A DNA stretch of 64,000 bases from Heptranchias perlo (GCF_035084215.1 NC_090340.1:5890001-5954000); one strand, 5' to 3'. Shown: positions 14,443 through 53,742, counted from the stretch's first letter. The notes: generated from the letters alone by a model not told the origin. A program made the numbers and translations.

Positions 14443-14497
14443 ATGTCTGTACTTGATGTGCTGCTGTACCTCGCAGCCCTGGCCATTATTTGCACAG
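14443..14497 (+). CDS. Copy 1 exon 1, signal peptide MSVLDVLLYLAALAIICT
   Basis: ATG, hydrophobic stretch and phase-1 donor G|GTTTAT (weak but conserved in copy 2). Confidence 0.8.
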
Positions 14498-17400
14498 GTT
14501 TATTTACACCTGCCTTTTAAATATTAAAGTATGAATAAAACGTCCATTAGCAGTATGGAGGCAGCTTCTGTTCAATGTTTACTGTAGTTTTCTCATTTCC
14601 TTTCGTTCTACTTCTGCCGCATTCTTTCTTCCTTTTTAATCCCCATGATCACTACCGCTGAATATAACCTGTGTTTGTGTTTATTTCTGACAGTTATTAA
14701 TGGGACCGCTCTCACAGTGACTCAGCTCCCTGCCCGCCTGACTCCGGTGAAAGGCACAAATGTCTCCATGTATTGCTCTGTGCCTCGCTTCGATCAGAAC
14801 GCAATGGTGGATGTTTACTGGCGGAGATCCGGCCAGGACGGGATTTTGGATTCGAGTGCAGACAAAAGGAAAACATTTAAACCATTGAAGAAAGGATCTG
14901 CCGAGTTTCACCTGCTGAATGTAGGTTTCCAGGACTCTGGAATCTATTATTGCAGCATGAGAGATTGGAGAGGAAAGATTTCCAACGGGAATGGGACTGA
15001 GCTTATTGTGCATGGTGAGTATCGCTGAGAGTTAATGAACCTTCGTTATATTCTACGAGTATAGATTAGAGAATTTAACAATGATCAGCAATGATGCGTT
15101 TTCTGACAGGACTTTTGATGTTTCTCTCAGTTCGGTTCGGTGCGGCTCCTTTCCCCCTATTTGCAGTGAATCCTGTCAGTTTACACAGAGCAGCACCGAT
15201 TACCCTGCACGGGGCAGTGGAATTCAGATTGTCTCACTTCAGTCAATCGTTGTTCTCTTATCCCGTATCATTTATATAAATCTGGTTTACCTTTTTTTTC
15301 ATTAATTCTCGGGTTTTGGACATCGCTGGCACCGTCGGCATTTATTGTCCATTCCTAGTTGCCAAGGTGGAGGTGGGTCTTCTCCTTGAGCCACTGCAGT
15401 CCATGTAGTGAAGGTGCTCCCACAGTGCTGTTAGGTGGGGAGTTCCAGGATTTTGATTCAGCGATGATAAAGCAAGGGCGATATATGTCCAAGTGAGGAT
15501 GACGTGTGACTTGGAGTGGGGGAACTTGGAGGTGATGTTGTTCCCATGCACCTGCTGCCCTTGTCCTTCTAGGTGGTGGAGGCCTCGGGTTTGGGAGGTG
15601 CTGTCGAAGAAGCCTTGGCGAGTTTCTGCAGTGCATCCTGTAGATGGTGCACACTGCAGCCACAGTGCGCCGGTGGTGGACGTAATATAAAGTGATGGAA
15701 TAAGTGCCGATCAAGCAGACTGTTTTTGTTCAGGATATTGTCGAGCTTATTGAATGTTGTTGCAGCTGTACCATCCAGGCAAGTGGAGAATATTCCATCA
15801 AACTTCTGACTTGTCGGTGGCGGTGCCGCTTTGGGAAGTTAGGAGTTGAGTCAGTCGCAGAGGAATAACCAGCGTCTGACCTGCTCCAGGAGCCGCAGCA
15901 TTTATGTGGCCATTTATATCACATATTTACAAATCGAAAGAGTTGAATGAGATTGTTTTTGTTTATTTTTATACCTCTATCCAATAAGAAAAAAGTGTCT
16001 TGGACTCTGAATAGAATTCTGCCTGGAATCACTTCCTTCAATCCTCCAATCACTGAGGGGCCGCTCCCGACCCACCTTTTACCGCACTCCGAAGTCCAAC
16101 AGTAACTCTCCCCGAGTGTCTGGCAATTCAACCGTGGGAGACAAGAGTGAGATTGTCAATATCTATCAGAAAATAGATACAAGTACTATCACACTGACAG
16201 AACGGGGGGGGGGGCGGTGGAGGGGAGCCTGAGAAGACGAGGAGTGAGCAAAGAGATAATCAAATGGACAGAGAGATTCAATGTGGTTGCGAATAGATTT
16301 TATTTTCAGTGATAGATATATTTGCTCTGATAGATTTGATTTCGATTGATAGATTTGTTTATGTGGGAAATAGATTTTAGATGTTTACAGTTGGGAATGG
16401 GTTTTTCAAGCATTGGATAAGGAACATTTACATGAAACAGAACGAAACTCGGTGCCACGAAGCCTGTGAGTGGATCATCTGCTGTTCAAGCTCAGTCTGT
16501 GTCTCCAGTAAGATCTCGGCGGTGAAGGCAAAGTATCTCCCATGGATCCCAGTGCCAGAGTGGGAACCGTGGTTTAAAAAAGGGATGGAAGACACATTAG
16601 TGACACAAGATCATCGAAGGAAAAGAAGTTCACAAGGATCTGTAATCATCACCTGCAGGTCACGTGGAGATAACTTTCTTACTGGGGAGTGATGACATTT
16701 AGTGGATCTCCCAATTGTTGAGATGCAGTTTAGGATGGAGACGAAGGTACTTTTATGACCGGAATGGGATCACTGTTCTATACCTCGAAAAAAATATGGA
16801 TTAATTACATTTGGAACTCGGGGCTGAAATATTCCTGATCAAGCAGTTAGTGACTGATCAGTTTACAGTTCTCACCGAGCGACAGGTTAGTTGAGGGAGG
16901 GGGAGCTGTGGGCATCTGAATGGAGTTGAACTCCTGAAAATGAAATACCAGGTTTTAGATCGGGATTTTAAGAGCTCTAAGTGCAATCGACGAGTGTTGA
17001 ATAGGATGGAGATAAAGTTAATACGAACATTGAATAATTAGTCCCGCAATTCCAACATCAAACTGTGACCTCGTCAGTCTGAAGTTCTAACAAACAGCAT
17101 GAGGTTCGGGATTATTCTCAGATGAGGAATTATTGATAAACCGAACAAGATAAAGTGACATGGAAAGAGAGAAGACAAGGAGCGAGTGTGTGGGAGGATT
17201 GGGAGGAGTGAAAAATAGAGAAGGATTGGACCTTGATCATTTTTTAAATATGATCGATTGGCCCATGGATGAGGCAGATAGATAATGGGGTTTAGGATCG
17301 AGCGGTATTCCACATTTGCCTATTTAAAAGCCATTGACTAGGCCACAGTAGGAGCAGTGCGCGAAATTTTGATGTGAAGGAGAGGGTGTAAGATTTATAT

Positions 17401-20400
17401 ACTTGGTGATATCAGTCCTCGATTCCCTGAATCAAAAGACATTAAAGGGAGACCCAGTAGACGGGATCTGCGGCGAGTCCCATTAGTGATCAAGGGGAAT
17501 AAATGCAGAAAAAGTAAGAGGGGGTTAGAAGATTTTTTTTTACTCAAAAGATTATTAGTGCGTGGGGTAGATCGGCAGAAGGGCTATTGGCGGAAATCAA
17601 TCAAAGGGGTTAGGGGGGAATTACATTAATATTAATGGATGCCGGGGGAGGGTAGGGAACTGGACTGAGGTAGAGAGCTCTTTCTGAGCTTAACCTTCTT
17701 CAATTTAACCGGAAAGTAAATGGACACGGAACACGGAGACAGTAAAATTCAGCGAGACTCTGCCGATGAATGTGTCACAGATGGGTCACTCAACGAGGAA
17801 TCATCTTGCGCCAGCAAGGCTCCGAGTCGAGAGCGGAGATCCGTCGACTTACTTGATCCGTAAGAAGCGGTGGAGACGGATCTCTGTCACTGCAGAATAT
17901 TGGGAGGTTGGTTAATTTGATCCTACTTTGGACCCTCTCCCTTTTAAATCGGAAACGAACAAAGACTTGAAATAATTCACGCAGAGCGAGAACCGGGGTC
18001 AGGACCGGAACATTATCTGGGAAATGAATCGAGTGAGTGAGCTCTGGTACAGGACAACTGGACGCGTTTTGGACCGAAACAACGAGTCCCAGACTGGAAC
18101 AGAGACAATAATTTCCTTCATGCTTTTGTATTAATTTATCACTCTGTCAGTGAAACCATATTCTCGAATACTGTCTCCCTATTACCGACACAGAAACCTA
18201 TTTAGAACGTAGGCCTAAATCACAGTGAAACACCAGCAGAAATAGACACCGGGAGATTAAAGAGATCCCACGGGACGGGTTCGGTTTAACTCGAACTTAA
18301 ATTCATTTCAATGCCCAGACCTGGGGCCTTCCCGTCACCGAGTGCTGGGTAAAGACAAGAACGAAATAAATATCGCCATGTTCTGTTTCAAGCAAATCAA
18401 GCGTTCGTTATTAATTCAAATATGGCGGTAAAATTTTCCTCTTAAAGGGACTCTGCAGATGCTCCATGCTCTCCCTTCTCGCCCTCTGTTCTTTCCTTTC
18501 TCTAATATAATATACGAGTAGTGATTTCAACTCAATTCCTTTAACTCCTTTCCAGTGCCGCCAACTCCTGTGGAGATTACCCGCCTGCTCTCTCCGTCTC
18601 TCACACTCCTCTGCACAACGGCTGCTTTTTTCCCCGAGGAGTTTAACCTCACTTGGTATCAAAATGGCTCCGAAATTACATCTGGGATAAACTTGGAGCA
18701 GACACGGAGCGAAGAGGGATTGTATCAAGTTTCCAGCTCCCTCATCTCTGTGCAGAGCGGGACGGTTTATATCTGCCAGGTGTCGCATGCCTCTCTCCCG
18801 ATTCCAGCCAACGCCAGCTACACGGTTCGTGATCCGGGTAAGAGACCCACCTCCTCAGCACTGCAGTAAGCTGTATCTGTGTTACATATAGGAGCCATTC
18901 AGGGACTTTCTGTCACCACTAATCCGCACCAGAACATTGTCAATGTAGTGTGTTTGAAGGGGACTGAAGGTGGTCATTGCAGTCTCAAAAAGCTTTTGAG
19001 GCGACCCCTCACAGTGAACACTATACAAGATGGAGTCCTGCGCAATTGATCGGCGTATCCATGTTTGGTTGGGGAATTAATTGCATTCTCATTGACAGAG
19101 GGTAGTCATTACTAGTTGTGGGACAATGCGGCCAGTCAGGATACATGGAGGAGTGAGAGACGTTGGTACGTGCTGGTCAAAATGTTAAAATGAACCATAC
19201 TTTCGAAACACAGTACCTGACGTAATGCAATGAGCAGGGAACCCCATCTCCACTGCCCAGCTCTTCAACTACATGGGCAGGTCCTCCATTGTCTGCTACT
19301 CGAGGGGCCCATTAGGGATCGGTGTAAGGATGGCTCTTCTTGATTCATATCCATGATCTGGATTAAGGCGTCCACGAGTTCACTGATGGGACAAATATCT
19401 GTACAGACGTCAGAACCCTTAAGGAGAAAACATTTACGATCGGATCGAGATGCGATCGGGGAATGGGCCTGTATCTGTCAGATGCCAATTAATGTAGATA
19501 AATGCAGTCTAATGCATGTGGGTGGGTTTAATACCAAGCATGTGTGTACAGTGCTAGGCTCTGAATTGAAGAATTAAAGAGACATGGGTGATGGTGTGTG
19601 AATCTCCAAAGTTCCACAACCAAGGCCAAGAGGTGATGACCAAAGCAATTAGAGTATAATGATGTATAGCCGGGACAAACCAATAGAAACAAAGAGCACC
19701 ATAATGTCCTTTCCATTGGTCAGCCCTCATTTACAATATTGTGTCCAGTTCTGATTCCCTCATATGATGAGAGTTCTCGGGCATTGGGGAAAAAAGTTCT
19801 GCGCAGAGCCACTAGATTGGTATATTTTAAAAACCCTTGGGTATCACGATAGGTTCAAGGATTTGGGTATTTGTACTCTGGAAAAGCATAGACTTTGGGA
19901 CACTTAATTGAACGATGAAGGGACTAGACTGTGTACACGTGGATAGATTACTTGAATTAAATTATTAGCGAGAACGAGGGCTCATGGGTACATGTCATTT
20001 AAGCACAGAACAAGGTGAGATATTTGGAGGATAGTCTTCATCCAGAAGGTCACTGACCTTTGGATGAAATCGAAGTCTCGTGTAGTGAGTGCGGATTCTC
20101 TGCAAAGGTACGAAAGGAGCTGGACGAGTTCCTGAAGGAGGCTGATATCGTTGTGTAAAAAAGATAGGTGTGATGTTGCATGACGTACCTCAAAGTCAAT
20201 GTTATTTACTGGAAATCGTTTCTCATCACCTTCGGGTCGGAGAGAAATCTCCTATAATTCTGTGGGGGATTTTACCTCTCCCTGGAGACCAACCGGCACA
20301 AACAATCACGGGGAGAGAGACAGACAGACGCATCCATACAAAAAGACACCGCCACCTCCACCACCCCCCTCCCCCACTCCCCACACACACAAATATTACA

Positions 20401-22505
20401 TACACATGATGAACAAAACTGCATAATCATTAATTAAATACGATTATTAATCCGAATAAATTGCTGATATTTTCAGGCATGGAAAGTCCCTGTGTGTTTT
20501 ACACTACGCTGTATCTGATGTTGATTAAATATTTCGCAATATCTCGCCAATAAAATGCTGAAATTCCAATTTCTCTGTCCCTTTTAGCTGACGGGAACAA
20601 TACTTTCCTCTACCCCCTGGTGTCGGGGTGTGCAGCAGGCGGGTTAATAATTCTCGTGCTGGTAATTCTTGTCAAGCGATGCAATTTCGTCAGAACTGAA
20701 GGTAAGAACTGACACGATCCTGATTCAGAATTAGGTTTGTTAGTTACATTTCAGCACGGCGGCAGCGAGGGGGAGGGCACGGTGTCTCGGGCCCAGACTG
20801 GGATCTAGATTTTGGGAGCGGTGTCCGTTACACTAAGTGAGTTTATGTTCCTGGGGCCGAATGTTGTGACGAGGGCCAGACCTTAAACCCAAGAGATCCC
20901 TCAGAATAATTTCAGCAGGTCTGAACATTAAAGCGACCCGTAGTTTCGGTTCGAACTTAGTGCTTTACAACAACTGAAGGTGGTGATGTGAATATTTTAC
21001 AGTAAATGTAGGGTTCTGTCGGGAGGGGCGACAAACCTGGGGTCGACGGCGGTGGAACTGATGGTGGGAATGTGACACGTGGTGTTCGGTTGTGAAAGGG
21101 TCCGTGTCTCGCCCAGCAATAGTACCGTATGTGACGGGTCAAGTTCTAATCAGGAGAATTGAGTGACCGTTCAGACCATTTTCTATTGATCGGTGATTCT
21201 GGTCACTTTGCGGGAATGTTGGGTATATATTGGCGGACACATCGCGCATCTGGTTCATGGTGAAATTGATCATTGGTCTAAATTTATTTCTCTACTAGAC
21301 ACGGAGATTAGTGAGGAGAGAACCGGCCACTTCGAGGAGCAGGTCAGTATCATGCTGGTGTAACGAGAAATCGACTGCTATTGCTCAATTAATGCACATT
21401 TGTTCCACATTTAAACCGGTATCACGAGGACATCAGGACGGCTCTCAGTCACTGCGGAACGCACTGTAACCACTTGCGGGTTTATTATTTCCCAGATCCT
21501 TCCCTCAGCTGAAAGTGTAGTCTCTGACCTGTCAGTGCCGCGATTGTATCTGTATTAATGTAGCACTCCAGTTCTCGCAGGCGCTGTTGTCGATATTTGT
21601 GTCTTGTCAGTGAGGTCGATTGGCTATTCACCTTTCGGGAGCGTCATAGTTTTGCTCGATCCTGTTCTCACCTCACGTCTCCACCCATTACCTTTCCAGC
21701 AGGGTCTCTGGGTGTTGACCGGGACGGACTGCGAGCCGAGATTGCCCCCCTCCTGACCCAAAGGCACTGAAACCAATTGTCTATCCTGAGATGAGTAAGC
21801 TCAGAACTCGGAAGTGCGTTAACTACTCAATAGCTCACGGTCCAGGCCTTGATCCACAGGGCCAGGGTGAGCTCTGATAACATAGTTTGTAAATGTATAT
21901 TCAGGAGAATGTCTCCGGCTGGGAATTATTGTCCTCCCTTGTCCTTATCCGGCCTTCTATTACGCCGCCAGCGCCATTGGAGCAATCCCCTGCATTGATC
22001 AGACTTACCCAAACCTTAACCGATGCCATTGGGTTTTAGTGGCCCTGTACGGTGCTGTTTGTGATTTGATGCGGAGCTAATCTTTCTCCAAAAACTCTCT
22101 TCAGGCTGTGGGAGGAAGAGAGGACGGGAGTCCGTCTTACGCTGCTATCAACTTCAGCGGTCACAGGAACATTGGAAAACCCAGACGGCAGGAAGACAGA
22201 ACCATCTATGCCCAGGTACAGTCGGGAAACAGAGCAGCCCATACCAACCAGGAATGGTCCGGTACTGGCGTCTGACCTCAGTAATGCACATTGAAGTCAT
22301 AGAACGCTTAGTGTGAGTAACAGATCCTATTGATCTTTCATTGTTGCTTCCACAGACTAAGCAAGGGACGGATTGTGCACTGACTTACGCGTCTCTGGAT
22401 CTGACCGGCTCCCAGAAAATGGCAAGAAGGAAACACAAAGAAAACGTAGCGGAGTATGCGGCGATCAGGATCAACAAGCCAAGGGAAGAATACGGGATTG
22501 TATAA
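14443..22505 (+). CDS. VJ-C1-TM-ITIM/ITSM Ig-superfamily receptor, copy 1 (SIRP/NKp30-like; 7 exons, 358 aa)
   Basis: Exons 14443-14497, 14694-15014, 18556-18837, 20588-20701, 21299-21342, 22105-22215, 22356-22505. All introns GT-AG with phases 1,1,1,1,0,0. They join into 1077 nt with no internal stop, and the same structure is kept in copy 2. Confidence 0.88.
14694..15014 (+). CDS. Copy 1 exon 2, V-set Ig domain with joined J motif
   Basis: tttctgacag acceptor; C...VYW...DSGIYYC...GNGTELIV; G|GTGAGT donor. Confidence 0.93.
15300..15910 (-). mobile_element. LINE family B 3' fragment in intron 2 (paralog ~47075-47685)
   Basis: HHRRTVAAVCTIYRMHC...RLLRQHLPNP. Confidence 0.85.
18556..18837 (+). 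CDS. Copy 1 exon 3, C1-set Ig domain
   Basis: LLCTTAAFFPEEFNLTWYQNG...GLYQVSSSL...YICQVSHASL; cctttccag acceptor; G|GTAAGA donor. Confidence 0.93.
19300..20170 (+). mobile_element. Old eroded CR1 in intron 3 (paralog ~50450-51320)
   Basis: WQM.INVDKC and LVSPHLQYCVQF remnants. Confidence 0.6.
20588..20701 (+). CDS. Copy 1 exon 4, transmembrane
   Basis: (A)DGNNTFLYPLVSGCAAGGLIILVLVILVKRCNFVRTE; cttttag acceptor; G|GTAAGA donor; no charged TM residue. Confidence 0.9.
21299..21342 (+). CDS. Copy 1 exon 5, short cytoplasmic exon (D)TEISEERTGHFEEQ
   Basis: tctctactag acceptor and CAG|GTCAGT donor; converts phase 1 to phase 0 as the downstream exons require. Confidence 0.75.
22105..22215 (+). 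CDS. Copy 1 exon 6, cytoplasmic (PSYAAI, TIYAQ)
   Basis: AVGGREDGSPSYAAINFSGHRNIGKPRRQEDRTIYAQ; ctcttcag acceptor; CAG|GTACAG donor. Confidence 0.82.
22356..22505 (+). CDS. Copy 1 exon 7, terminal ITIM exon
   Basis: TKQGTDCALTYASLDLTGSQKMARRKHKENVAEYAAIRINKPREEYGIV*; ttccacag acceptor. This frame is not in the ORF track. Confidence 0.85.
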   Translation, partial: TKQGTDCALTYASLDLTGSQKMARRKHKENVAEYAAIRINKPREEYGIV

Positions 22506-26490: not shown

Positions 26491-26496
26491 TAATAT

Positions 26497-27745
26497 CAGT
26501 CTACTCTAAATCATCAGCAAAGTGATGGAAGCTGTCATCGAAAGTGCAATCAAGCGGCACTTACTCACCAATAACCTGCTCGCCGATGCTCAGTTTGGGT
26601 TCCGCCAGGCCCACTCGGCTCCAAACTTCGTCCAAACATGGACAAAAGAGCTGAATTCCAGAGTTGAGGTGAGAGTGACTGCCCTTGACATCAAGGCAGC
26701 ATTTGACCGAGTGTGGCACCAAGGAGCCCTAGTAAAATTGAAGTCAATGGGAATCAGGGGGAAAACTCTCCAGTGGCTGGAGTCATACATGGCACAAATG
26801 AAGATGGTAGTGGTTGTTGGAGGCCAATCATCTCAGACCCAGGACATTGCTGCAGGAGTTGCTCAAGGCAGTGTCCTAGGCCCAACCATTTTCAGCTGCT
26901 TCAACAATGACCTTCCTTCTATAACAAGGTCAGAAATTAGGACGTTCGCTGTTGATTGCACAGTGTTCAGTTCCATTCGCAACCCCTCAATGACCATCTC
27001 CAACAAGAGAGAGTCTAGCCATCTCCCCCTGACATTCAACGGCATTACCATCGCCGAATCCCCCACCATCAACATCCTGGGGTCACCATTGACCAGAAAC
27101 TTAACTGGACCAGCCATATAAATACCGTGGCTATAAGAGCAGGTCAGAGGCTGGGTATTCTGCGGCGAGTGACTCGCCTCCTTATTGCCGAAATCCTTTC
27201 CACCATCTACAAGGCACAAGTCAGGAGTGTGATGGAATACTCTACACTTGCCTGGTCGAGTGCCGCTCCAACAACACTCAAGAAGCTCGACACCATCCAG
27301 GACAAAGCAGCCCGTTTGATTGGCACCCCATCCACCACACTAAACATTCACTCCCTTCACCACCGGCGCACTGTGGCTGCAGTGTGTACCATCCACAGGA
27401 TGCACTGCAGCAACTCGCCAAGGCTTCTTCGACAGCACCTCCCAAACCCGGGACCTCTACCAACTGGAAGGACAAGAGCAGCAGGCACATGGGAACAACA
27501 CCACCTGCACGTTCCCCTCCAAGTCACACACCATTCCGACTTGGAAATATATCGCCGTTCCTTCATCGTCGCTGGGGCAAAATCCTGGAACGCCCTTCCG
27601 AACATCACTGTGGGAGAACCGTCACCACACGGACTGCAGCGGTTCAAGAAGGCGGCTCACCACCACCTTCTCAAGGGCAATTAGGGATGGGCAATAAATG
27701 CTGGCCTTGCCAACGATGCCCACATCCCATGAACGAATAAAAAAA
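26497..27745 (+). mobile_element. LINE family B, unit-2 specific
   Basis: QFGFR, ALDIKAAFDRV, QGSVLGP; poly-A tail; inserted in a CR1 tail and absent at ~2200. Confidence 0.88.
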
Positions 27746-28049
27746 TACTATGACATTATGTTTGCATCTCAACCATCAGTTCCTTAACCTGTCCAGCACA
27801 TCGTCGTGGAACAGTCGGAAGGCAACTTTCAGAAGTTCTATTTAAAGAGATCTTCAGCTCCATTAAGATGAATCTTTGGTTAACTGGTTTAGGCTGCGCG
27901 GATGTTGTTTGTTTGAGCTGTTTTTGGATACTGTTTCGGTGTTAAATCTTATTAAAGAGAGAGTTTGCTGAAGGCTACAACAATTTCACTGATTTTTCTT
28001 CTTACCAATTGCTGTACATGTGAATGCTGCTGGGCGGACCATTGAGCCT

Positions 28050-28600
28050 CACAAATGAGGAAGAGGACGAGCAGCAAGGAACGCAGTAAAGACCTGCACA
28101 GGCTGGTAGAAGAGGGCGAAAGAGGCAAGATCTTACAGCATGCGGGTCTTCAGGAACCGATCCTCATACCTGGACCTCACAGAGGAACAGAATGTATGGC
28201 GGCTGCGTTTCAACAGGGAATAAGTCACTTACATGTGCCACCTGTTGCAGTGAGAATTGGAACAGAGCACCAGGGTAGGCAACGTATTCCCTGTGGCAGT
28301 GAAAGTCACCCTCGCTCCAAACTTTGAGGCTTCTGGCTCCTTCTAAACTGCTTCTGGAAACATCAACAACATCAGTCAGTTTGTTGTGCAGATCACCATC
28401 CTACAGGACACTGTTGCACTGATATCTACGAGTCGGCAGCAGTTGGTCACCTTCCACATGGAAATTGACAAGCAGGAAGAAAGAATACCCGCATTGCTGG
28501 ATTTCCGCAGGGGCAGGAGATCATAGACTGCACGTACATAGAACTGCTTACTCCCCATCATGAAGCAGCTCTGTTTATGAACAGGAAGTACAGTAAGACC
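28050..28600 (+). pseudogene. PIF/Harbinger (HARBI1-like DDE) transposase fossil
   Basis: FPVAVKVTLAPNFEASGSF*TASGNINNISQFVV and RIAGFPQGQEIIDCTYIELLTPHHEAALFMNRK. Confidence 0.75.
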
Positions 28601-30325: not shown

Positions 30326-30361
30326 AGCAGAGTACAAATTAATGCAACAATCAAGACGAAA

Positions 30362-39559: not shown

Positions 39560-42500
39560 CATAGACTCATAAAAAGGTTGCAGCTCGGAAGGAGGCCCAT
39601 CGAGTCCGCGCCGGGTCGATGCAAGAGCAATCCAGCTCGTCCCACTCCCCCGCCCTTTTCCCAAGTACTTGCTTTCAAGTACTTATCCAGTTCCCTTTCG
39701 AAGGCCATGATTGAATCTGCCTCCACCACCTCCTCGGGCAGTGCATCAGGTCAAACATGGGCAAGGAAACCTCCTGCTGATTACCACCTACCGCCCTCCC
39801 TCAGCTGATGAATCAGTCCACCTCCATGTTGAACAGCACTTTGAGGAAGCACTGAGTGTAGCAAGAGCACAGAATGTACTCAAGGTGCGGGATTTCAATG
39901 TCCATCTCCAAGAGTGGTTCGATAGCACCACTACTGAACGAGCAGGTCGAGTCCTGAAGGATATAGCTGCCAGACTGGGCCTGTGGCAGGTGGTGAGTGA
40001 ACCAACACGAGGGAAAAACTTGCTTGACCTCGTCCTCACCAAACTATCTGTCGCAAATGCATCTGTCCATGACAGTATTGGTAGGAGTGACGACTGCACA
40101 ATCCTCGTGGAGACGAAGTCCCATCTTCGCACTGAGGAAATCTATCCAAAGTGTTGTGTGGGATCACCACCATGCTAAATGGGATAGATTCAGAACAGAT
40201 CTAGCAGCTCAAAACTTGGCGTGCTGTGGGCCATCAGCAGCAGCAGAATTGCATTCCAGCACAATCTGTGACCTCATGGCCCGGCATATTCCTCACTCTA
40301 CCATTACCAACAAGCCAGGGGATCAACCCTGGTTCAATGAGGAGCGTAGAAGAGCATGCCAAGAGCAGCACCAGGCGTACCTAAAAATGAGGTGCCAACC
40401 TGGTGAAGCTACAACTCAGGACTACATGCATGCTAAACAGCGGAAGCAACATGCTTTAGACAAAGCTAAGCGATTCCACAACCAACGGATCAGATCAAAG
40501 CTCTGCAGTCCTGCCACATCCAGTCGTGAATGGTGGTGGACAATTAAACAACTAACGGGAGGAGGAGGCTCTGTAAACATTCCCATTCTCAATGATGGCG
40601 GAGTCCAGCACGTGAGTGCAAAAGACAAGGCTGAAGCGTTTGCAACCTTCTTCAGCCAGAAGTGCCGTTTGGACGATCCATCTCGGCCTCCTCACGATAT
40701 CCCCACCATCACGGAAGCCAGTCTTCAGCCAATTCGATTCACTCCACGTGATATCAAGAAACGACTGAGTGCACTGGATACAGCAAAGGCTATGGGCTCC
40801 GACAACATCCCGGCTCTAGTGCTGAAGACTTGTGCTCCAGAAGCAGCTGCGCCTCTAGCCAAGTTGTTCCAGTACAGCTACAAAACTGGCATCCACCCGA
40901 CAATGTGGAAAATTGACCAGGTATGTCCTGTCCACAAAAAGCAGGACAAATCCAATCCGGCCAATTGCTGCTCCATCCGTCTACTCTCAATCATCAGCAA
41001 AGTGATGGAAGGTGTCGTTGACAGTGCTATCAAACTGCACTTACTCACCAATAACCTGCTCACTGATGCTCAGTTTGGGTTCCGCCAGGACCACTCGGCT
41101 CCAGACCTCATTACAGCCTTTGACAAATGTGCTGAATTCCCGAAGTGAGGTGAGAGTGACTGCTCTTGACATCAAGGCAGCATTTGATCGAGCGTAGCAC
41201 GAAGGAGCCCGAGTAAATTTGAAGTCAATGGGAATTAGGGGGAAAACTCTGCAGTGCCTGGAATCATACCTAGCACAAAGGAAGATGGTAGTGGTTGTTG
41301 GAGGCCAATCATTTCAGCCCCAGGACATTGCTGCAGGAGTACCTCAGGGCAGTGTCCGAGGCCCAATGATCTTCAGCTGCTTCATCAATGACCTTACCCC
41401 CATCATAAGTTCAGAAATTGGGATGTTCGCTGATGATTGCACAGTGTTCAGTTCCATTCGCAACCCCTCAAATAATGAAGCAGTCCAAGCCCGCATGTAG
41501 CAAGACCTGGACAACATCCAGGCTCGGGCTCATAAGTGGCAAGTAACATTCGCGCCAGACAAGTGCCAGGCAATGACCATCTCCAACAATGGAGAGTCTA
41601 ACCATCTCCCCTTGACATTCAAACGGCTTTACCATCGTCGAATCCCCCACCATCAACATCTTGGGGATCATCATTGACCAGAAACTTAACTGGACCAGCC
41701 ATATAAATACTGTGGCTACAAGAGCAGGTCAGAGGCTGGGTATTCTGCGGCAAGCGACTCATCTCTTAACTCCCCAAAGCCTTTCCATCATCTACAAGGC
41801 ACAAGTCAGGAGTGTGATGAAATACTCTACACTTGCCTGGATGAGTGCAGCTCCAACAACACTCAAGAAGCTCGACAAAATTCAGGACAAAGCAGCCCGC
41901 TTGATTGGCACCCCATCCACCACCCTAAACATTCACTCCCTTCACCACCAGCACAATGTGGCTGCAGTGTGTACCATCCACAGGATGCACTGCAGAAACT
42001 CGCCAAGGCTTCTTCAACAGCACCTCCCAAACCCGCGAACTCTACCAACTAGAAGGACAAGAGCAGCAGGCAGATTGGAATAACACCAACTACACTGTCC
42101 CCTCCAAGTCACACACCATCCCGACTTGGAAATATATCACCGTTCCTTCATCGTCACTGGGTCAAAATCCCGAAACTCCATTCCTAACAGCAGTGTGGGA
42201 GAACCTTCACCATACGGACTACAGCGGTTCAAGAAGGCAGCTCACCACGACCTGCTCAAGGGCAATTAGGGATGGGCAGTAAATGCTGGCTTCACCAGCG
42301 AAGCCCACATCCCATGAACGAATAAAAAATTTCCATATCCTAACCACTCGCTGTGTAAAATGTATTTCCTCATGTCACCTTTAGTTCTTTTGCCAATCAC
42401 ATTAAATCTATGTCCTCGAGTTCTTGACCCTTACGCTGATGGGAACCGTATCTCTCTATCGATTCTGTCTAGACCCTTCATGATTTTGAATACCTCTATC

Positions 42501-46214: not shown

Positions 46215-46269
46215 ATGTCTGCACTTGATGTGCTGCTGTACCTCGCAGTCCTGGCCATTATTTGCACAG
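46215..46269 (+). CDS. Copy 2 exon 1, signal peptide MSALDVLLYLAVLAIICT
   Basis: Paralog of 14443-14497. Confidence 0.8.
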
Positions 46270-49200
46270 GTTTATTTACAACTGCCTTTTAAATCTGGAA
46301 GTGTGAACAAGAAGTCCATTAGCAGTATGGAGGCAGCTTCTGTTCAATGTTTATTGCAGTTTTCTCATTTCTTTTCGTTCTACAACTGCCGCATTATTTC
46401 CTCCCATTTAATTCCCAAGATCAATATCCCTGACTATAACCTGTGTTTGTGTTTATTTCTGACAGTTATTAATGGGACCGCTCTCACAGTGCTTCAGATC
46501 CCCGCCCGCCTGACTCCGGTGAAAGGTGCAAATGTCTCCATTTATTGCTCTTTCCCGCTTTTCGATCGCAACGCATTGGTGGATGTTTACTGGCGGAGAG
46601 CCGGCCAGGACGGGATTTTGGATTCGAGTGCAGACAAAAGGAAAACATTTATACCATTCAAGAAAGGATCTGCCGAGTTTCACCTGCTGAATGTCGGTTT
46701 CCAGGACTCTGGAATCTATTATTGCAGCATGAGAGATTGGAGAGGAAAGATTTCCAACGGGAATGGGACTGAGCTTATTGTGTATGGTGAGTATCGCTTA
46801 GGGGTTAATGGACCTTCGTAAAATTCTATGAGTATCGATTAGAGAATATTTAACAAAGATCAGCAATGATGCGTTTTCTGACAGGACTTTTGATGTTTCT
46901 CTCAGTTCGGTTCGGTGCGGCACCTTTCCCCCTATTTGCAGTGAATCCTGTGAGTTTACACAGAGCAGCACCGATTACCCTGCACGAGGCAGTGGAATTC
47001 AGATGATCTGACTTCAGTCAATCGTTGTTCACTTACCCCGTATCATTTATGTAAACCTGTTTTTTAACTTTTCTCATTAATTCTCGGGATGTGGACATCG
47101 CTGGCACGGTCGGCATTTATTATCCATTCCTAGTTGCCATGGTGGCGGTGGGTCTTCTCCTTGAGCCACTGCAGTCCATGTAGTGAAGGTGCTCCCACAG
47201 TGCTGTTAGGTAGGGAGTTCCAGGATTTTGATTCAGCGATGATAAAGCAAGGGCGATATATGTCAAAGTGAGGATGACGTGTGACTTGGAGTGGGTGAAC
47301 TTGAAGGTGATGTTGTTCCCATGCACCTGCTGCCCTTATCCTTCTCGGTGGTGGAGGCCTCGGGTTTGTGAGGTGCTGTCGAAGAAGCCTTGGCGAGTTT
47401 CTGCAGTGCATCCTGTAGATGGTGCATACTGCAGCCACTGCGCGCCGGTGGTGGACGGAATATAAGCTGGTGGAATAAATGCCGATCAAGCAGACTGTTT
47501 TTGTTCTGGATATTGTCGAGCTTATTGAGTGTTGTTGCAGCTGTACCATCCAGGCAAGTGGAGAATATTCCATCAAACTTCTGACTTGTCGGTGGCGGTG
47601 CCGCTTTGGGAAGTTAGGAGGTGAGTTACTCGCCGAGGAATAACCAGCGTCCGACCTGCTCCAGGAGCGGCAGCATTTATGTGGCCATTTATATCACTTA
47701 TTTACAAATCGAAAGTGTTGAATCAGATTGTTTTTGTTTATTTTTATACCTCTATCCAATAAGAAAAAAGTGTCTTTGACTCTGAATAGAATTCTGCCTG
47801 GAATCACTTCCTTCAATCCTCCAATCACTGAGGGGCCGCTCCCGACCCACCTCTTACCGCACTCCGAAGTCCAACAGTAACTCTCCCCGAGTGTCTGGCA
47901 ATTCAACCGTGGGAGACAAGAGTGAGATTGTCAGTATCTATTAGCAAATAGATACAAGTACTAACACACAGACAGATATAAAGGACAGGGGAGAGGGGGG
48001 TGGGGGTGCGGGCTGTGTGAGGTTGGGGGGTTTGGTGGAGGGGAGCCTGTGAAGTCGAGGATCTGGCAAATAAATAATTAACTGGACAGAGAGGATTGAC
48101 AGGCTAAACACTGAACAACATTTTACTGCATGAAATAACAGATTTTATTAACACTATGGATTCATTTTGGTTCCTAATAGATTTTATTTTCAGAGATGGA
48201 TACATTTGCTCTGATAGATTTGATTTCGATTGATAGATTTGTTTACAAGGGAAATAGATTTTCGATGTTTACAGTTGGGAATGGGTTTTTCAAGCATTAG
48301 ATAAGAACATTTATATGAAACAGAACGAAACTCCGTGCCACGAAGCCTGTGAGTGGATCATCTGCTGTTCAAGCTCAGTCTGTGTCTTCAGTAAGATCTC
48401 GGCGGCGAAGCCAAAGTATCTCCCATGGATCCCAGTGCCAGAGTGGGAATCGTGGTTCAAAAAAAGGATGGAGCATATGTTTGGAAGACACATTAGTGAC
48501 ACAAGATCATCGAAGGAAAAGAAGTTAACTAGGATCTGCAATCATCACCTGCAGGTCACGTGGAGATAACTTTCTCACTGGAGAGTGATGACATTTAGTG
48601 GATCTCCCAATTGTTGAGATGCAGTTTGGGATGCAGACGAAGGTACTTTTATGACCGGAATGGGATCACTGTCATATACCTCGAAAAAAAATGGATTAAT
48701 TACATTTGGAACTCGGGGCTGAAATATTCCTGATCAAGTTAGTGACTGATGAGTTTACAGTTCTCACCGAGCGACAGGTTAGTTGAGGGAGGGGGAGATG
48801 TGGGCATCTGAATGGAGTTGAGCTCCTGAAAATCAAATACCAGGTTGTAAATGGGGATTTTAAGAGATCTAATTGCAATAGTCGAGTGTTGAATAGGATG
48901 GAGATAAAGTTCATACGAACATTGAATAATTAGTCGGGCAATTCTAATATCAAACTGTGACCTCGTCAGTCTGAAGTTCGAACAACCAGCATGAGGTTCA
49001 GGATTATACTCAGATGAGGAATTATTGATAAACCGAACAAGATAAAGTGACATGGAAAGAGAGAAGACAAAGAGCAAGCCTCTCCCTTTTAATTCGTGAT
49101 ATCGGAAACTAACGAAGTCTTGAAATAATTCACGCAGAGCGAGAACCGGGGTCAGGATCGGAACATTATCTGAGAAATGAATCGAGTGAGTGAGCTCTGG

Positions 49201-52200
49201 TACAGGACAACTGGACGCGTTTTAGACCTAAACAACGAGTCCCAGACTGGAACAGAGACAATAATTTCCTTCATGCTTTTGTATTAATTTATCACTCTGT
49301 CAGTGAAACCATATTATAGAATACTGTCTCCGTATTAGCAAAGTAGAAACCGATTTAGAACGTAGGCCTAAATCACAGTGAAACACCAGCAGAAATAGAC
49401 ACCGGGAGATTAAAGAGATCCCACGGGACGGGTTCGGTTTAACTCGGATTTAAGTTCATTTCAATGCCCAGACATGGGGCCTTCCCGTCACCGAGTGCTG
49501 GATAAAGACAAGAACGAAATAAATATCGCCATGTACTGTTTCAAGCAAATCAAGCGTTCGTTATTAATACTAAAATGGCGGAAAAAATTCCCTCTTAAAG
49601 GGACTCTGCAGATGCGCCATGCTCTCCCTTCTCGCCCTCTGTTCTTTCCTTTCTCTGATATAATATACGAGTAGTGATTTCAACTCAATTCCTTTAACTC
49701 CCTTCCAGTGCCGCCAACGCCTGTGAAGATTACCCGCCTGCTCTCTCCGTCTCTCACACTCCTCTGTACAACGGCTGCTTTTTTCCCCGAGGAGTGTAAC
49801 CTCACTTGGTATCAAAATGGCTCCGAAATTAAATCTGGGATAAACACGGTGGCAACAAGGAGCGAAGAGGGATTGTATCAAGTTTCCAGCTCCCTCATCT
49901 CTGTGCAGAGCAACACGGTTTATATCTGCCGGGTGTCCCATGCCTCTCTCCCGACTGCAGCCAACGCCAGCTACACGGTTCGTGATCCGGGTAAGAGACC
50001 CTCCTCAGCACTTCAATAAGCTGTATCTGTATTACATATAGGAGCCATTCAGGGACTTTCTGTCACCACTAATCTGCACCAGAACATTTTCAATGCAGTG
50101 TGTTTGAAGGGGACTGAATGTGCTCATTGCAGTGTCAAAAAGTTTTTGAAGCGGCCCCTCACAGTGGTCACTATGCAAGATGGAGTCCTGCGCAATTGAA
50201 CAGCGGACCCATGTTTGGTTGGGGATTTAATTGTATTCTCATTGACAGAGGGTAGTCATTAATAGTTGTGGGACAATGCGGCCAGTCAGGATATATGGAG
50301 GACTAAGAGAAGTTGGTACGATCTGGTCAAAATGTTAAAATGAACCAAACTTTCGAAACACAGTATCTGACGTAACGCACTGAGCGGGGAAACCCATCTC
50401 CACTGCCCAGCTCTTCAACGACATGGGCAGATCCTCCATTGTCTGCTACTAGAGGTGTCCATTAGCGATCGGTGTAAGGATTGCTCTTCTTGATTTATAT
50501 CAATGATCTGGATTAAGGCGTCCACAAGTTCACTGATGGGACAAATATCTGTGCTGACGTCAGAACCCTTAAGGAGAAAATATTAACAATCGGATCTGGA
50601 TGCGATAGGGGAATGGGCCTGTATCTGGCAGATGACATTTAATGTAGATAAATGTAATGTAATGCATGTGGTTAGGTTTAATACCAAGTATGTGTGAACA
50701 GTGCTAGGCTCTGAATTAAAGAATTAAAGAGACATGGGTGTTACTGTCTGAATCTCGAAAGTTCCACGACCAAGGCCGAGGGGTGATGACCAAAGCTAGT
50801 AGAATATAACGATGTATAGCCGGGACAAACCAATAGAAACAAAGAGCACCATAATGTCCTTTCCCTTGGTCAGCCCTCATCTACAATATTGTGTCCAGTT
50901 CTGATTCCCTCATATGATGAGAGTTATTGGGGCATTGGGGGAAAAAAGTTCAGCGCTGAGCCACAAGATTGATACTATTTTAAGAACCCTTAGTTATCAC
51001 GACAGGTTCAAGGATTTGGGTATTTGTACTCTGGAAAAGCGTAGACTTCTGGATACTTAATTGAACGATGAAATGACAAGACTGTGTACACGTGGATAGA
51101 TCACTTGAATTGAATTATTAGCGAGAACGAGGGCTCATGGGTACATGTCCCTTAAGCACAGAACACGGTTAGATATCTGGAGGATAGTTATCGTCCAGAA
51201 AATCACTGACCTTTGGATTAAGTCGAAGTCTCGTGTAGTGAGTGCGGATTCTCTGCAAAGGTACAAAAGGAGCTGGACGAGTTCCTGAAGGAGGCTGATA
51301 TCGTTGTGTACAAAAGATAGGTGTGATGTTGCATGACGGCCCTCAAGGTCAATGTTATTTACTGGAACTCGTTTCTCATCACCTTCGGGTCGGAGAGAAA
51401 TCTCCAATAATTCTGTGGGGGATTTTGACTCTCCCTGGAGAGCAATCGGCACAAACAATCACGGGGAGAGAGACAGACAGACACATCCATAAAAAAAGAC
51501 ACCGCCACCTCCTCTCCTCACCCCCACGCACACACACACAAATATTTACATACACCAGATGAACAAAACTGCATAATCATTAATTAATTACGATTATTAA
51601 TCCGAATTAAATGCTGATATTATCAGAAATGGAAAGTCCCTGTGTGCTTTACACTGCGCTGTACTTTGGCCGTTTGATGCTGAGATACGATGGAGTCGCC
51701 TTAGTATCTCGGTGAGAGGCGATAGCTGTGATATGTCGGTGCTGTAAAATATCTGCCTTTGATTGAATATTTCGCAATATTTCGCCTGTAAAATGCTAAA
51801 ATTCCAATTTCTCTGCCAGTTTTAGCTAACCGGAACAATACTTTCCTCTACTCCCTGGTGTCGGGGTGTGCAGCAGGCGGGTTAATAATTCTCGTGCTGG
51901 TAATTCTTGTCAAGCGATGCAATTTCGTCAGAACTGAAGGTAAGAACTGACACGATCCTGATTCAGAATTAGGTTTGTTAGTTACATTTCAGCCCGGCGG
52001 CAGCGAGGGGGAGGGCACGGTGTCTCGGGCCCAGACTGGGATCTAGATTTTTGGAGCGGTGTCCGTTACACTAAGTGAGTTTATGTTCCTGGGGCCGAAT
52101 GTTGTGACGAGGGTCAGACCTTAAACCCAAGAGATCCCTCAGAATAATTTCAGCAGGTCTGAACATTGAAGCGATCCGTAGCTGCGGTTCGAACTTCGTG

Positions 52201-53742
52201 CAAAACAACAACTGAAGGTGGTGATGTGAATCGTTTACAGTAAATGTAGGGTTCTGTCGGGAGGGGCTCCAAATCTGGGGTCGAGGGCGGTGGAACTGGT
52301 GGTGGGAATGTGACACGTGGTGTTCGGTTGTAAAACGGTCCGTTTCTCGCCCAGCAATAGTACCGGATGTGACGGATCAAGTTCTAAACAGGAGAATTGA
52401 GTGACCGTTCAGACCATTTTCTATTGATCGGTGATTCTGGTCACTTTGCGGGAATGTTGGGTATATTTTGGCGGACACGTCGCGCATCTGGTTCATGGTG
52501 AAATTGATCATTGGTCTAAATTTATTTCTCTACTAGACACGGAGATTAGTGAGGAGAGACCCGGCCACTTCGAGGAGCAGGTCAGTATCATGCTAGTGTC
52601 ACGAGAAATAGACTGCTATTGCCCATGTAATGCACATTTATACCACATTTGTACCGGTATCACTCGGACATCAGGACTTCCCTCCGTAACTACGGAGCAC
52701 TCCGTGACCATTTGCGGGTTTATTGTTACCCAGAGACCACCCCTCCACTGAAAGTGTAGTCTCTGGCCTGTCAGTGCTGCGATTGTATCTGTATTAATGT
52801 AGCCCTCCAGTTCTCGCAGGCGCTGTTGTCGATATTTCTGACTTGTCAATGCGTTCGATTGGCTATTCATCTATGGGAAGCGTCATAGTTTAGCTCAATC
52901 CTGTTCTCACCTGACATCTCCACCATGACCTTTCCAGCAGGGTCTCTGGGTGTTGACCGGGACGGACTGCTGGCCGAGATTGCCCCCCTCCTGATTCAAA
53001 GGCACCAAAGCCAATTGTCCATCCTGAGATGAGAAAGCTCAGAACTCGAAGTGCGTTAACTACTCAACAGCACACGGGCCAGGCCTTGACCCACAGGGCC
53101 AGGGTGAGCTCTGATAACATGGTTTGTAAATGTATATTCAGGAGAATGTCTCCGGCTGGGAATTATTGTCCTCCCTTTTCCGTATCCGGCCTTCTATTAC
53201 ACCGCCAGCGCCATTAGAGCAATCCCCTGCACTGATGAGACTTACCCAAACCTTAACCGATGCCAATGGGTTTTAGTGGTCCTGTACGGTGCTGTTTGTG
53301 ATTTGATGTAGAGCTAATCTTTCTCCAAAAATTCTCTTCAGGCTGTGGGAGGAAGAAAGGACGGCAGTCCGTCTTACGCTGCTATCAACTTCAGCGGTCA
53401 CAGGAACATTGGAAAACCAAGACGTGAGGAAGATAGAACCGTCTATGCCCAGGTACAGTCGAGAAACGGAGCAGCCCATTCCAACCAGGACTGGTCCGGT
53501 ACTGGCGTCTGACCTCAGTAATGCACATTGAAGTCATAGAACGCTTAGTGTGAGTAACAGATCCTATTGATCTTTCATTGTTGCTTCCACAGACCAAGCA
53601 AGGGACGGATTGTACACTGACTTACGCGTCTCTGGATCGGACCGGCTCCCAGAAAATGGCAAGAAGGAAACAGAAAGAAAACGTAGCGGAGTATGCGGCG
53701 ATCAGGATCAACAAGCCAAGGGAAGAATACGGGATTGTATAA
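46215..53742 (+). CDS. VJ-C1-TM-ITIM/ITSM Ig-superfamily receptor, copy 2 (7 exons, 358 aa)
   Basis: Exons 46215-46269, 46466-46786, 49709-49990, 51826-51939, 52537-52580, 53342-53452, 53593-53742. Exon lengths and phases are identical to copy 1 and the frame is open throughout. Confidence 0.88.
46466..46786 (+). CDS. Copy 2 exon 2, VJ Ig domain
   Basis: CSFPLFDRNALVDVYW...DSGIYYC...GNGTELIVY; canonical splice sites. Confidence 0.93.
49709..49990 (+). CDS. Copy 2 exon 3, C1-set Ig domain
   Basis: LLCTTAAFFPEECNLTW...YICRVSHASL; canonical splice sites. Confidence 0.93.
51826..51939 (+). CDS. Copy 2 exon 4, transmembrane
   Basis: (A)NRNNTFLYSLVSGCAAGGLIILVLVILVKRCNFVRTE. Confidence 0.9.
52537..52580 (+). 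CDS. Copy 2 exon 5, (D)TEISEERPGHFEEQ
   Basis: Paralog of 21299-21342 with splice sites intact. Confidence 0.75.
53342..53452 (+). CDS. Copy 2 exon 6 (PSYAAI, TVYAQ)
   Basis: AVGGRKDGSPSYAAINFSGHRNIGKPRREEDRTVYAQ. Confidence 0.82.
53593..53742 (+). CDS. Copy 2 exon 7, terminal ITIM exon
   Basis: TKQGTDCTLTYASLDRTGSQKMARRKQKENVAEYAAIRINKPREEYGIV*. Confidence 0.85.
   Translation, partial: TKQGTDCTLTYASLDRTGSQKMARRKQKENVAEYAAIRINKPREEYGIV

Follow-up and report, generated by a model that had tools for sequence, protein, structure and literature searches.

Tandem VJ-C1 receptor genes of the sevengill shark Heptranchias perlo look like members of the SIRP family

What kind of receptor is encoded by two neighbouring genes of the sevengill shark Heptranchias perlo? 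A sequence-only reading of a 64,000-nucleotide stretch of DNA (the window) had assigned it to a probable shark, which is correct, and had proposed a tandem pair of non-rearranging VJ-C1 inhibitory receptors from an uncharacterised family with relevance to pre-RAG antigen-receptor ancestry. The pair is real, with intact reading frames and splice sites. The genes look like new shark members of the known SIRP-type family of immune brakes, having a single C1 domain, and not like a new kind of receptor, because an antibody-like head and a tyrosine-bearing tail can be aligned end to end with SIRPalpha.

Both genes are intact and lie on the plus strand, gene A at 14443–22505 and gene B at 46215–53742; gene A starts with its ATG at 14443, and the gene B stop codon ends at 53742. 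The pair sits within a tandem duplication of about 31.8 kb (approximately 92% identity). By self-BLAST this segmental duplication extends over 2200–56166, approximately 2200–24942 corresponding to approximately 27745–56166 at 88–93% identity, with LINE insertions interrupting the match. Scanning the window with a family HMM gave exactly two exon sets, and the same search revealed no further V or C1 exon in the window on either strand. Each gene has seven exons, encoding a split leader, a germline-joined VJ, a C1-set domain, an uncharged transmembrane segment (TM) and, in three exons, the tail. All 12 introns are bounded by GT..AG. Their phases, 1-1-1-1-0-0, close, and with the stop counted the two genes have 359 and 361 codons. 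Gene B equals RefSeq XP_067853508 (360 aa); full-length analyses were run on this database protein, while gene A was searched exon by exon.

In gene A, the leader exon (14443–14497; MSVLDVLLYLAALAIICT plus 1 nt, phase 1) is defined by an ATG and a GT donor read directly and by a family HMM match. Exon 2 (14694–15014, phase 1-1) encodes the VJ (YYCSMRDWRGKISNGNGTELIVH), has AG and GT ends and crosses the V/J boundary without a recombination signal sequence (RSS). The single C1-set domain with its CxVxH motif, YICQVSHASL, follows in exon 3 (18556–18837), which is backed by Pfam and PDB matches. Exon 4 (20588–20701; sequence and family HMM) encodes a stalk, the uncharged TM (LYPLVSGCAAGGLIILVLVILV) and KRCNFVRTE. 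The tail is contributed by cyt-a (exon 5, 21299–21342, 44 nt, DTEISEERTGHFEEQ, phase 1 to 0), cyt-b (exon 6, 22105–22215) with the PSYAAI and TIYAQ tyrosines, and cyt-c (exon 7, 22356–22505) with the canonical ITIM LTYASL, AEYAAI, EEYGIV and the stop. Exons 6 and 7 were placed from the sequence, and a loose end among the RNA-type contigs is identical to the start of exon 6.

These contigs stem from four runs of one sample in one study, labelled ‘RNA?’, and were mapped over 46650–52649 at a likeness of at least 95%. The runs are argued to be RNA because coverage is confined to exons and the joints (V to C1, C1 to TM, TM to cyt-a) are GT..AG; a loose end coincides with the cyt-b start. Spliced contigs leading from V through C1 and TM into the tail, the check that the sequence-only reading had proposed for its gene model, were obtained from these runs. 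They inform on splicing and not on expression level, tissue or copy-specific expression.

For gene B, exon 1 (46215–46269, split leader) was placed by the sequence and the RefSeq model. Exon 2 (46466–46786, VJ) is 100% identical to XP_067853508 and is joined by RNA at 46785>49708 (GT..AG, in X1–X3) directly to exon 3 (49709–49990, C1-set), which matches the family HMM and has RNA joints at both sides. The stalk/TM exon 4 (51820–51939) is placed by the joint 49989>51819, found in four of four runs, by the sequence and by the RefSeq model (...DPVLANRNN); its acceptor is shifted upstream by 6 nt relative to gene A, adding Val-Leu. Exon 5 (cyt-a, 52537–52580) shows the joint 51937>52535 (cut +2), again in four of four runs, and a loose end past 52581 that equals the start of cyt-b. 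Exons 6 (53342–53452; PSYAAI and TVYAQ) and 7 (53593–53742; LTYASL, AEYAAI, EEYGIV and stop) follow from the sequence and the RefSeq model. The step from cyt-a to cyt-b rests on the loose end, and that from cyt-b to cyt-c on the RefSeq model and conservation across species. The 44-nt cyt-a exon, which had not been named before, encodes DTEISEER(T/P)GHFEEQ between the TM and PSYAAI exons; it is needed to keep the reading frame between these two, and is backed by the RefSeq model as well as by the RNA joint.

Both extracellular domains are readily classified. The V exon is a Pfam V-set (E 1.1e-8, 35.6 bits at a cut-off of 26) and the second domain a C1-set (E 3.4e-12, 47 bits at a cut-off of 21), on which I-set and C2-set score 18–22 bits. 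The V domain closes with the canonical J motif G-x-G-T-x-L-x-V, and the whole of YYC...GNGTELIV lies in one open exon. That V and J are contiguous in a single exon agrees with what had been read from the sequence. No RSS was found at the V/J boundary; the sole CACAGTG heptamer lies in FR1 and has no nonamer. In an AlphaFold model, in which pLDDT exceeds 90 for the greater part of both Ig domains, the ectodomain fits closest to the V-C pairs of TCR-beta and Ig light chains, in line with the shape that had been suggested.

The TM segment, LY(P/S)LVSGCAAGGLIILVLVILV, contains zero charged residues, and an uncharged TM followed by a tyrosine-rich tail of about 110 residues is borne out in both genes. 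All the motifs quoted earlier occur on the plus strand in both copies: YYC...SNGNGTELIV(H/Y), PSYAAI, T(I/V)YAQ, LTYASL, AEYAAI and EEYGIV. The description of the tail as multi-ITIM holds for its tyrosine motifs but not for the strict ITIM consensus, since among the tail motifs only LTYASL fits [ILVS]xYxx[ILV]; in PSYAAI, AEYAAI and EEYGIV, which are of the YxxI/V type, position −2 is occupied by a non-canonical residue. Likewise T(I/V)YAQ stands, but the ‘V’ that follows it in the genomic sequence, giving an apparent ITSM T(I/V)YAQV, is intronic: T(I/V)YAQ is spliced to TKQ, so that this second tyrosine (Y2) has Thr at +3 (TVYAQT in gene B). The additional fifth tyrosine at the C-terminus, EEYGIV, was found in H. 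perlo only. An ITAM reading of the C-terminal YAAI-x8-YGIV, which has ITAM-like spacing, was dropped, the arrangement being absent in Heterodontus and Hemiscyllium.

The suspected family expansion proved extensive: relatives at E<1e-30 fall into 92 clusters (50% identity), and the sampled named matches, down to E~1e-29, are all from sharks, rays or chimaeras, most of them automatically named SIRPalpha-like. An ITIM-bearing tail was present in 41 of the 83 relatives scanned and a short, ITIM-less tail in 16; ten of these 16 carry a charged TM residue, and a TM type with conserved R...IIVDH recurs. One activating-type relative, XP_067853510, has an Arg-bearing TM (FCRFLLGLMVILLGTTIIVDH) and a tail of eight residues. 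It shares 99% identity with gene A in the V domain, whereas its C1 groups with that of gene B. With SIRPalpha chosen as their root and SIRP-like sequences as the only outgroups, Ig, TCR and PRARP being absent, the trees cannot show orthology.

The relationship to SIRP emerges from the full-length comparison. By hhalign, a 44-sequence family profile matched corvid SIRPalpha with 99.5% probability (E 3e-22) in one collinear alignment of 350 columns, running from the leader through V (domain d1) and C1 (d2), skipping SIRPalpha d3 as an insertion, to the TM and the entire tail. BLASTP paired the shark and SIRPalpha tyrosines in order: SYAAINF with TYADLNF, VYAQTKQ with EYACIQTNQ, LTYASLD with LTYADLD, and AEYAAI with SEYASV. 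Aligned with the SIRPalpha tail by themselves, the tails of five chondrichthyan species, including a chimaera, gave z values of 5.6–9.9 (8.5–8.6 for gene B), and none of 1000–3000 shuffles matched the observed score. As a control, the tails of two other ITIM-bearing VJ receptors gave z values of 1.3–5.9; convergence could account for some of the tail score, given that one control reached 5.9 and that YAxL/I motifs are common among inhibitory receptors.

On these sequence comparisons, genes A and B are probably two expressed products of a recent duplication, belonging to a large family of chondrichthyan VJ-C1 receptors that do not rearrange and are homologous to SIRP. The label ‘uncharacterised’ is not supported as it stood for a family whose 44-member profile can be aligned with avian SIRPalpha over its whole length and many of whose members are already called ‘SIRPalpha-like’ in RefSeq. 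Clear orthology to a characterised family had been named as the finding that would remove the novelty; what we find, well-supported homology to SIRP, goes largely but not fully that far. Shared with the SIRP family are a non-rearranging V whose G strand is J-like, the C1-set domain(s) behind it, the uncharged TM, a tail of about 110 residues whose four tyrosine motifs agree in order and are similarly spaced, and paired activating relatives with charged TM and short tail. Against the SIRP reading stand the single C1, aligned to d2, where SIRPalpha has two (d2 and d3), a difference in number and not in type, and the presence in H. perlo of one strict ITIM only, Y1 and Y2 deviating from the consensus. 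Unlike SIRPalpha, the genes add the tyrosine of EEYGIV; shark copy number is also much larger than in the SIRP family. SIRPbeta has a Lys in the middle of its TM, whereas the shark activating forms carry an Arg near the outer TM end and a VDH motif.

Each gene product is a type I membrane protein with leader, V domain with built-in J strand, C1 domain, uncharged TM and a tail in which four tyrosine motifs correspond one to one to those of SIRPalpha, with YGIV added at the C-terminus. Ligand binding by the V domain may lead to phosphorylation of the tail tyrosines by Src-family kinases, and the phosphorylated tail, judging from its motifs, could dock SHP-1/SHP-2-type phosphatases and so damp activation of the leukocyte carrying the receptor. 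The activating-type relatives, probably encoded elsewhere on the same chromosome, combine nearly the same ectodomain with an Arg-bearing TM and an eight-residue tail. Accordingly, the family would act as paired receptors like SIRPalpha/SIRPbeta.

It is possible, though in our judgement unlikely, that the genes form an independent, chondrichthyan-centred VJ-C1 lineage, sister to PRARP or UrIg or a relic of an antigen-receptor precursor, whose tail came to resemble that of SIRPalpha by convergence or exon shuffling and not by descent of the whole gene. The ectodomain itself resembles Ig light chains and UrIg2 no less than SIRPalpha: the family profile scored 71.1 bits with SIRPalpha d1–d2, 72.7 with Ig lambda V-C and 71.9 with Ig kappa V-C, and since the Ig scores are as high, similarity of the Ig domains is non-specific. 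In Foldseek searches against the PDB the top matches, about 50 at E~1e-14, were all TCR-beta or light chains, and being near-equal they cannot rank SIRP against antigen receptors. PDB profile searches placed SIRPalpha (2wng) and SIRPgamma among the best matches, with UrIg2 outranking SIRPalpha overall; UrIg2 (9dmx) came first or second for the family profiles as well as for the C1 exon, whose best matches were constant domains of IgA, UrIg2 and IgM. Proteins from outside the Chondrichthyes share only 24–30% sequence identity with these receptors. What speaks against independent origin is the single collinear SIRPalpha alignment from leader to C-terminus, the match in order of all four tail tyrosines, similarly spaced, across five species, one of them a chimaera, and the presence, as in SIRP, of activating partners.

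The non-rearranging order VJ, one C1, TM and cytoplasmic ITIM is reportedly that of PRARP in bony vertebrates. The tail of PRARP is reported to carry one ITIM in place of the four-tyrosine pattern of SIRP. PRARP is described as an MHC-linked VJ gene (PMC10751288). UrIg/UrIg2 share with our genes a shark non-rearranging VJ exon and a split leader followed by C1-type domains, of which they have three or more, unlike the single C1 exon here. UrIg2 comprises 9–11 C domains, forms disulfide-linked homodimers, lies within the antigen-receptor complex (Flajnik et al.; PMC12227049) and, as described there, lacks an ITIM tail and paired activating forms. Ig light chains and TCR chains resemble the shark genes in V-J-C1 order, split leader, phase-1 exons and predicted two-domain fold; the shark genes differ in lacking an RSS and a separate J and in having their own TM and signalling tail. 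NITR and NKp30 also have a non-rearranging V with a J motif, and many NITRs, which occur in bony fish, have ITIM tails and activating partners, but the second domain of NITR is I-type or missing and NKp30 is a lone VJ, whereas the shark genes have a clear C1-set domain. The suggested relevance to pre-RAG ancestry finds no footing in these comparisons: the family profile scores Ig V-C and SIRPalpha d1–d2 about equally, and a closer tie to the antigen-receptor precursor than that of SIRP itself is unsupported.

That one or both copies are non-functional duplicates and the apparent transcripts come from paralogues is very improbable. The ectodomain pN/pS between genes A and B is high (V 0.69, C1 0.86), paralogues can map when contigs are placed at a likeness of 95% or more, and some contigs show paralogue-type differences. 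Both copies, however, still have every splice site, the stop and all seven reading frames intact at approximately 8% neutral divergence. The pN/pS of cyt-b is 0.22, and exons are 93–98% identical while the flanking DNA is about 92%. A single 778-nt contig is approximately 99% identical to gene B over V, C1 and TM, and one loose end is exactly the gene A cyt-b start. High ectodomain pN/pS is usual in paired immune receptors.

Hardly credible is a B7-family ligand (CD276/B7-H3 or B7-H6-like) or a tapasin/MHC-related protein: discordant RefSeq product names in the clade (‘CD276 antigen homolog’, ‘NCR3LG1-like’, ‘tapasin-related protein-like’, ‘H-2 class I ... alpha chain-like’), CD276 among the PDB matches (E~3e-13) and ESM Atlas neighbours that are generic V/C1, B7 and butyrophilin clusters only (butyrophilin-like and PD-L1-like included) point that way, but the names conflict among near-identical paralogues and so reflect weak best matches of the C1 domain, CD276 is outranked by SIRPalpha, Ig and UrIg2 in both family profiles, a tapasin N-terminal domain and MHC alpha1/alpha2 are absent, and B7 ligands (CD276, B7-H6) have an IgV without J motif and no ITIM tail, where the shark genes close their V with a canonical J motif and have a SIRPalpha-like tail. 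The gene models are already in RefSeq, under inconsistent automatic names.

Against the SIRP reading, a recent survey places the origin of the SIRP family in Tetrapoda (PMC13262535). We found no literature on a shark SIRP-like VJ-C1 family, which is weak evidence of absence as subscription journals were not covered. If the homology to SIRP holds, SIRP-type paired inhibitory and activating receptors would predate the split of cartilaginous and bony vertebrates, and the two-domain VJ-C1 form would be either ancestral or a shark simplification. To the more far-reaching idea we give little credence: VJ plus a single C1 would be ancestral for the SIRP lineage and date back to the gnathostome root, members might pair with one another by V and C1 as light and TCR chains do, and the family would be a living, polymorphic, germline-encoded ‘antigen-receptor-like’ recognition system near the pre-RAG precursor, to which both kinds of signalling, inhibitory and activating, were already attached. 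By itself, the family adds no evidence on the origin of rearranging antigen receptors. Its members are numerous and evolve fast, with ectodomain exons exchanged between inhibitory and activating ones; this is the usual signature of pathogen-driven selection, which makes the family a good system for studying the origins of myeloid and lymphoid checkpoints.

The window holds a tandem segmental duplication: on self-comparison, approximately 2200–24942 matches approximately 27745–56166 at 88–93% identity, the match being interrupted by LINE-type insertions. Each duplication unit carries one gene on the + strand, termed gene A (14443–22505) and gene B (46215–53742). The unequal spacing of the two copies is due to the LINE insertions between the units. 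Several reverse-transcriptase-like ORFs of these insertions occur, in both orientations, at 26500–31600 and 39700–42300. Spurious Cys/Val/Tyr-rich ORFs (maximum 151 aa) on the − strand at 37700–39200 were rejected as a gene, being the product of a TG/CA-rich simple-sequence tract.

Exon boundaries were set from splice sites in the sequence, and the exons of gene A were searched singly, not as one joined product. Each gene has seven + strand exons: leader (A 14443–14497, B 46215–46269), VJ (A 14694–15014, B 46466–46786), C1 (A 18556–18837, B 49709–49990), stalk and transmembrane segment (TM; A 20588–20701, B 51820–51939), and three cytoplasmic exons, cyt-a (A 21299–21342, B 52537–52580), cyt-b (A 22105–22215, B 53342–53452) and cyt-c including the stop codon (A 22356–22505, B 53593–53742). 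The introns are GT..AG throughout, with phases 1-1-1-1-0-0, and the coding length with stop is 359 codons in gene A and 361 in gene B. In gene B, a CCC to CAG change (51801–51830 compared with 20570–20595) creates a stalk/TM acceptor that lies 6 nt farther upstream than the acceptor predicted in gene A. This upstream acceptor is used by the RNA contigs and the RefSeq model, and the stalk gains Val-Leu. A family HMM applied to the six-frame translation of the whole window found no V or C1 exons beyond genes A and B on either strand.

The sequence-only reading had described two such VJ-C1 genes, and this observation was confirmed with three small corrections. One is the 44-nt cyt-a exon, which that reading did not name and which is required to bridge phase 1 at the end of the TM exon and phase 0 at the start of the exon encoding PSYAAI. 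Both V exons contain a CACAGTG heptamer in FR1; as this sole heptamer has no nonamer and lies away from the V/J boundary, there is no RSS at that boundary.

A protein search with the V part of copy B identified the RefSeq protein XP_067853508 of H. perlo (P0001; 360 aa, 100% identical), which is annotated as ‘CD276 antigen homolog’ and encoded on a 66.5-Mb chromosome. Its sequence agrees with the seven-exon model, cyt-a included. Transcript evidence was taken from contigs of four runs of one H. perlo sample over 46650–52649, a 6-kb region that runs from within the VJ exon of gene B to just past cyt-a; placement at 95% likeness lets paralogues map too. Coverage within this region comprises the exons and one intronic repeat, and nothing else. 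Three GT..AG joints of gene B were recovered: V to C1 (46785>49708) in three runs, and C1 to TM (49989>51819) and TM to cyt-a (51937>52535) in four runs each. A loose contig end behind 52581 corresponds to the beginning of cyt-b, and a 778-nt contig is ~99% like gene B over V, C1 and TM. One further loose end is identical to the cyt-b start of gene A. Since spliced transcripts joining the exons exist, the gene model stands.

The intronic repeat (47050–47650, V–C1 intron of gene B) corresponds to the 3′ portion of a LINE-like element and has ORFs of reverse-transcriptase type close by. Related copies are located at 348–936, 4772–5413, 15293–15910, 27113–27745 and 41698–42236. Its summed contig depth is ~1e5 in all four runs, thousands-fold above exon depth; it represents either a highly abundant transposon transcript or a high-copy sequence.

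The V exon encodes a V-set domain (Pfam E 1.1e-8) and the C1 exon a C1-set domain (E 3.4e-12, 47 bits). The nearest solved structures are Ig light chains, TCR-alpha/-gamma, PD-1 and CD79b for V (E~1e-5), and the constant domains of IgA, UrIg2 and IgM for C1. An AlphaFold model built from an alignment of 44 sequences shows a TM helix, a disordered tail and, across most of the two Ig domains, pLDDT >90. Its Foldseek neighbours are V–C pairs of TCR-beta and light chains, so that ‘light-chain or TCR-chain shape’ is a fair description.

All peptide motifs of the earlier reading were found in both copies. The other two corrections concern the tail. In the apparent ITSM T(I/V)YAQV, the final V is read from the donor-site GTA, and the mRNA encodes T(I/V)YAQ-TKQ. 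Strict agreement with the ITIM consensus is limited to LTYASL; the other tyrosines are of the form YxxI/V, in which Pro, Ala or Glu occupies position −2. At the extreme C-terminus, YAAI-x8-YGIV has ITAM-like spacing (P0001 residues 345–360, window 53695–53739; gene A 22458–22502). Because its last tyrosine is missing in Heterodontus and Hemiscyllium, it is unlikely to be a conserved ITAM.

A family profile searched against 1.84 billion representatives matched 92 clusters below an E-value of 1e-30 and 499 below 1e-10. All named matches sampled down to E~1e-29 are chondrichthyan, with Heptranchias, Heterodontus, Scyliorhinus, Hemiscyllium, Chiloscyllium, Carcharodon, Cetorhinus, Mustelus, Stegostoma, Pristis, Mobula, Hemitrygon and Callorhinchus among the genera. 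Their automatic names conflict, the commonest being ‘tyrosine-protein phosphatase non-receptor type substrate 1-like’, i.e. SIRPalpha-like. Matches outside chondrichthyans start at E~1e-23 to 1e-25 and comprise ‘SIRPalpha-like’ or ‘tapasin-related’ proteins of coelacanth, lungfish and bichir, and genuine avian SIRPalpha.

Among 83 relatives scanned, 41 have an ITIM-bearing tail following a conserved TM of the type GCAxGGL...GK(R/Q)C. Another 16 have a short tail without ITIM, 10 of them with a charged TM residue. R(F/L)xLG...IIVDH, a further conserved TM type, is found repeatedly in this short-tail group. The short-tail type is represented on the same chromosome by XP_067853510, which is 99% identical to gene A in its V domain and clusters with gene B in its C1 domain; the V domains of genes A and B differ at 12 of 106 positions. 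This mosaic is the pattern produced by gene conversion between inhibitory and activating partners. Of these 12 differences, four are in the BC (CDR1-like) stretch, and the J-proximal half has none. The pN/pS values between the genes (V 0.69, C1 0.86, cyt-b 0.22) derive from small counts and are therefore read no further than as a relaxed or diversifying ectodomain and a conserved tail.

The opposite strand carries an orphan exon at 7860–7975 (−) in copy A and 33610–33725 (−) in copy B, ~6.5 kb and ~12.5 kb upstream of the respective leader exon. It reads ...STDRFQTIRLRHFLVGLMLNLMGPTHIVDRFKSVPF, is preceded by a good acceptor, and is homologous, at 47% identity over 58 aa (E 8e-8), to the activating-type exon that encodes TM and short tail in XP_067853510. 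Its TM core contains Asn and Pro. No V or C1 exon was found on its strand within the window. It looks like the relic of an inverted activating gene that was copied along with the duplication.

BLASTP aligned the gene B product with Corvus SIRPalpha in two segments: the V end and C1 on the Ig domains d1–d2 (28% identity, E 2e-14), and C1, TM and tail on d3, TM and tail (E 1e-9). The four SIRPalpha tyrosine motifs pair with four shark motifs in the same order. Local alignment of the tails alone scored 70 compared with 28 ± 4.9 for shuffled sequences (z 8.6; 0 of 3000 shuffles as high). Tails from Heterodontus, Hemiscyllium, Callorhinchus and Mobula gave z 5.6–9.9 when aligned with the SIRPalpha tail. 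Alignment with control tails from two other VJ receptors that carry ITIMs, a three-VJ protein of a snake and a single-V protein of a lungfish, gave z 1.3–5.9. Profile–profile comparison of 44 family members with corvid SIRPalpha (99.5% probability, E 3e-22) yielded a single collinear alignment of 350 columns covering leader, V on d1, C1 on d2, TM and the full tail, with d3 skipped. These alignments are good evidence for homology of the shark VJ-C1 family to the SIRP family, and fall short of proving orthology. For the Ig part alone, light chains (72.7 and 71.9 bits) are as close as SIRPalpha d1–d2 (71.1 bits).

The published shark non-rearranging VJ-C genes UrIg and UrIg2 carry numerous C domains and lack an ITIM tail (PMC12227049), whereas genes A and B have one C1 and an ITIM-type tail. 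UrIg2 outranks SIRPalpha overall in the profile search because of its many C domains. PRARP of bony vertebrates reportedly has the same VJ-C1-TM-ITIM plan as genes A and B; a PRARP-type relationship is a rival to the SIRP-family reading. PMC10751288 counts PRARP as another of the non-rearranging VJ genes. Distant matches include two other non-rearranging VJ receptors, a Thamnophis elegans protein with three tandem VJ domains and an ITIM tail (P0190, 451 aa) and a Protopterus annectens protein with a single VJ and an ITIM tail (P0191, 284 aa); VJ-plus-ITIM receptors evidently occur in several domain arrangements across vertebrates. SIRPalpha has a d3, whereas the single C1 of genes A and B leaves d3 without counterpart. 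Genes A and B are best classed as single-C1 shark representatives of the SIRP kind and not as a new kind of receptor. The earlier interpretation is half right. The genes are real and expressed, and they encode non-rearranging VJ-C1 receptors of inhibitory type that belong to an expanded family of paired receptors. The link to antigen-receptor ancestry that it proposed is not stronger here than it is for SIRP.

The analysis shows how the genes are built and spliced, which types of domain they encode, how large the family is, that the tail is SIRP-like and that activating-type partners exist. By analogy with SIRPalpha and other ITIM receptors, the V domain would engage a ligand, the tail tyrosines would be phosphorylated and recruit SHP-1/SHP-2, and activation of the receptor-bearing cell would be damped. 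The partners with Arg in the TM may pair with an Asp-bearing ITAM adaptor. No account of a shark VJ-C1 SIRP-like family was found in the open-access literature; its proteins are already in RefSeq, and Callorhinchus members have long carried SIRP-like names. A 2026 survey places the origin of the SIRP family in Tetrapoda (PMC13262535). The shark family points to an earlier origin.
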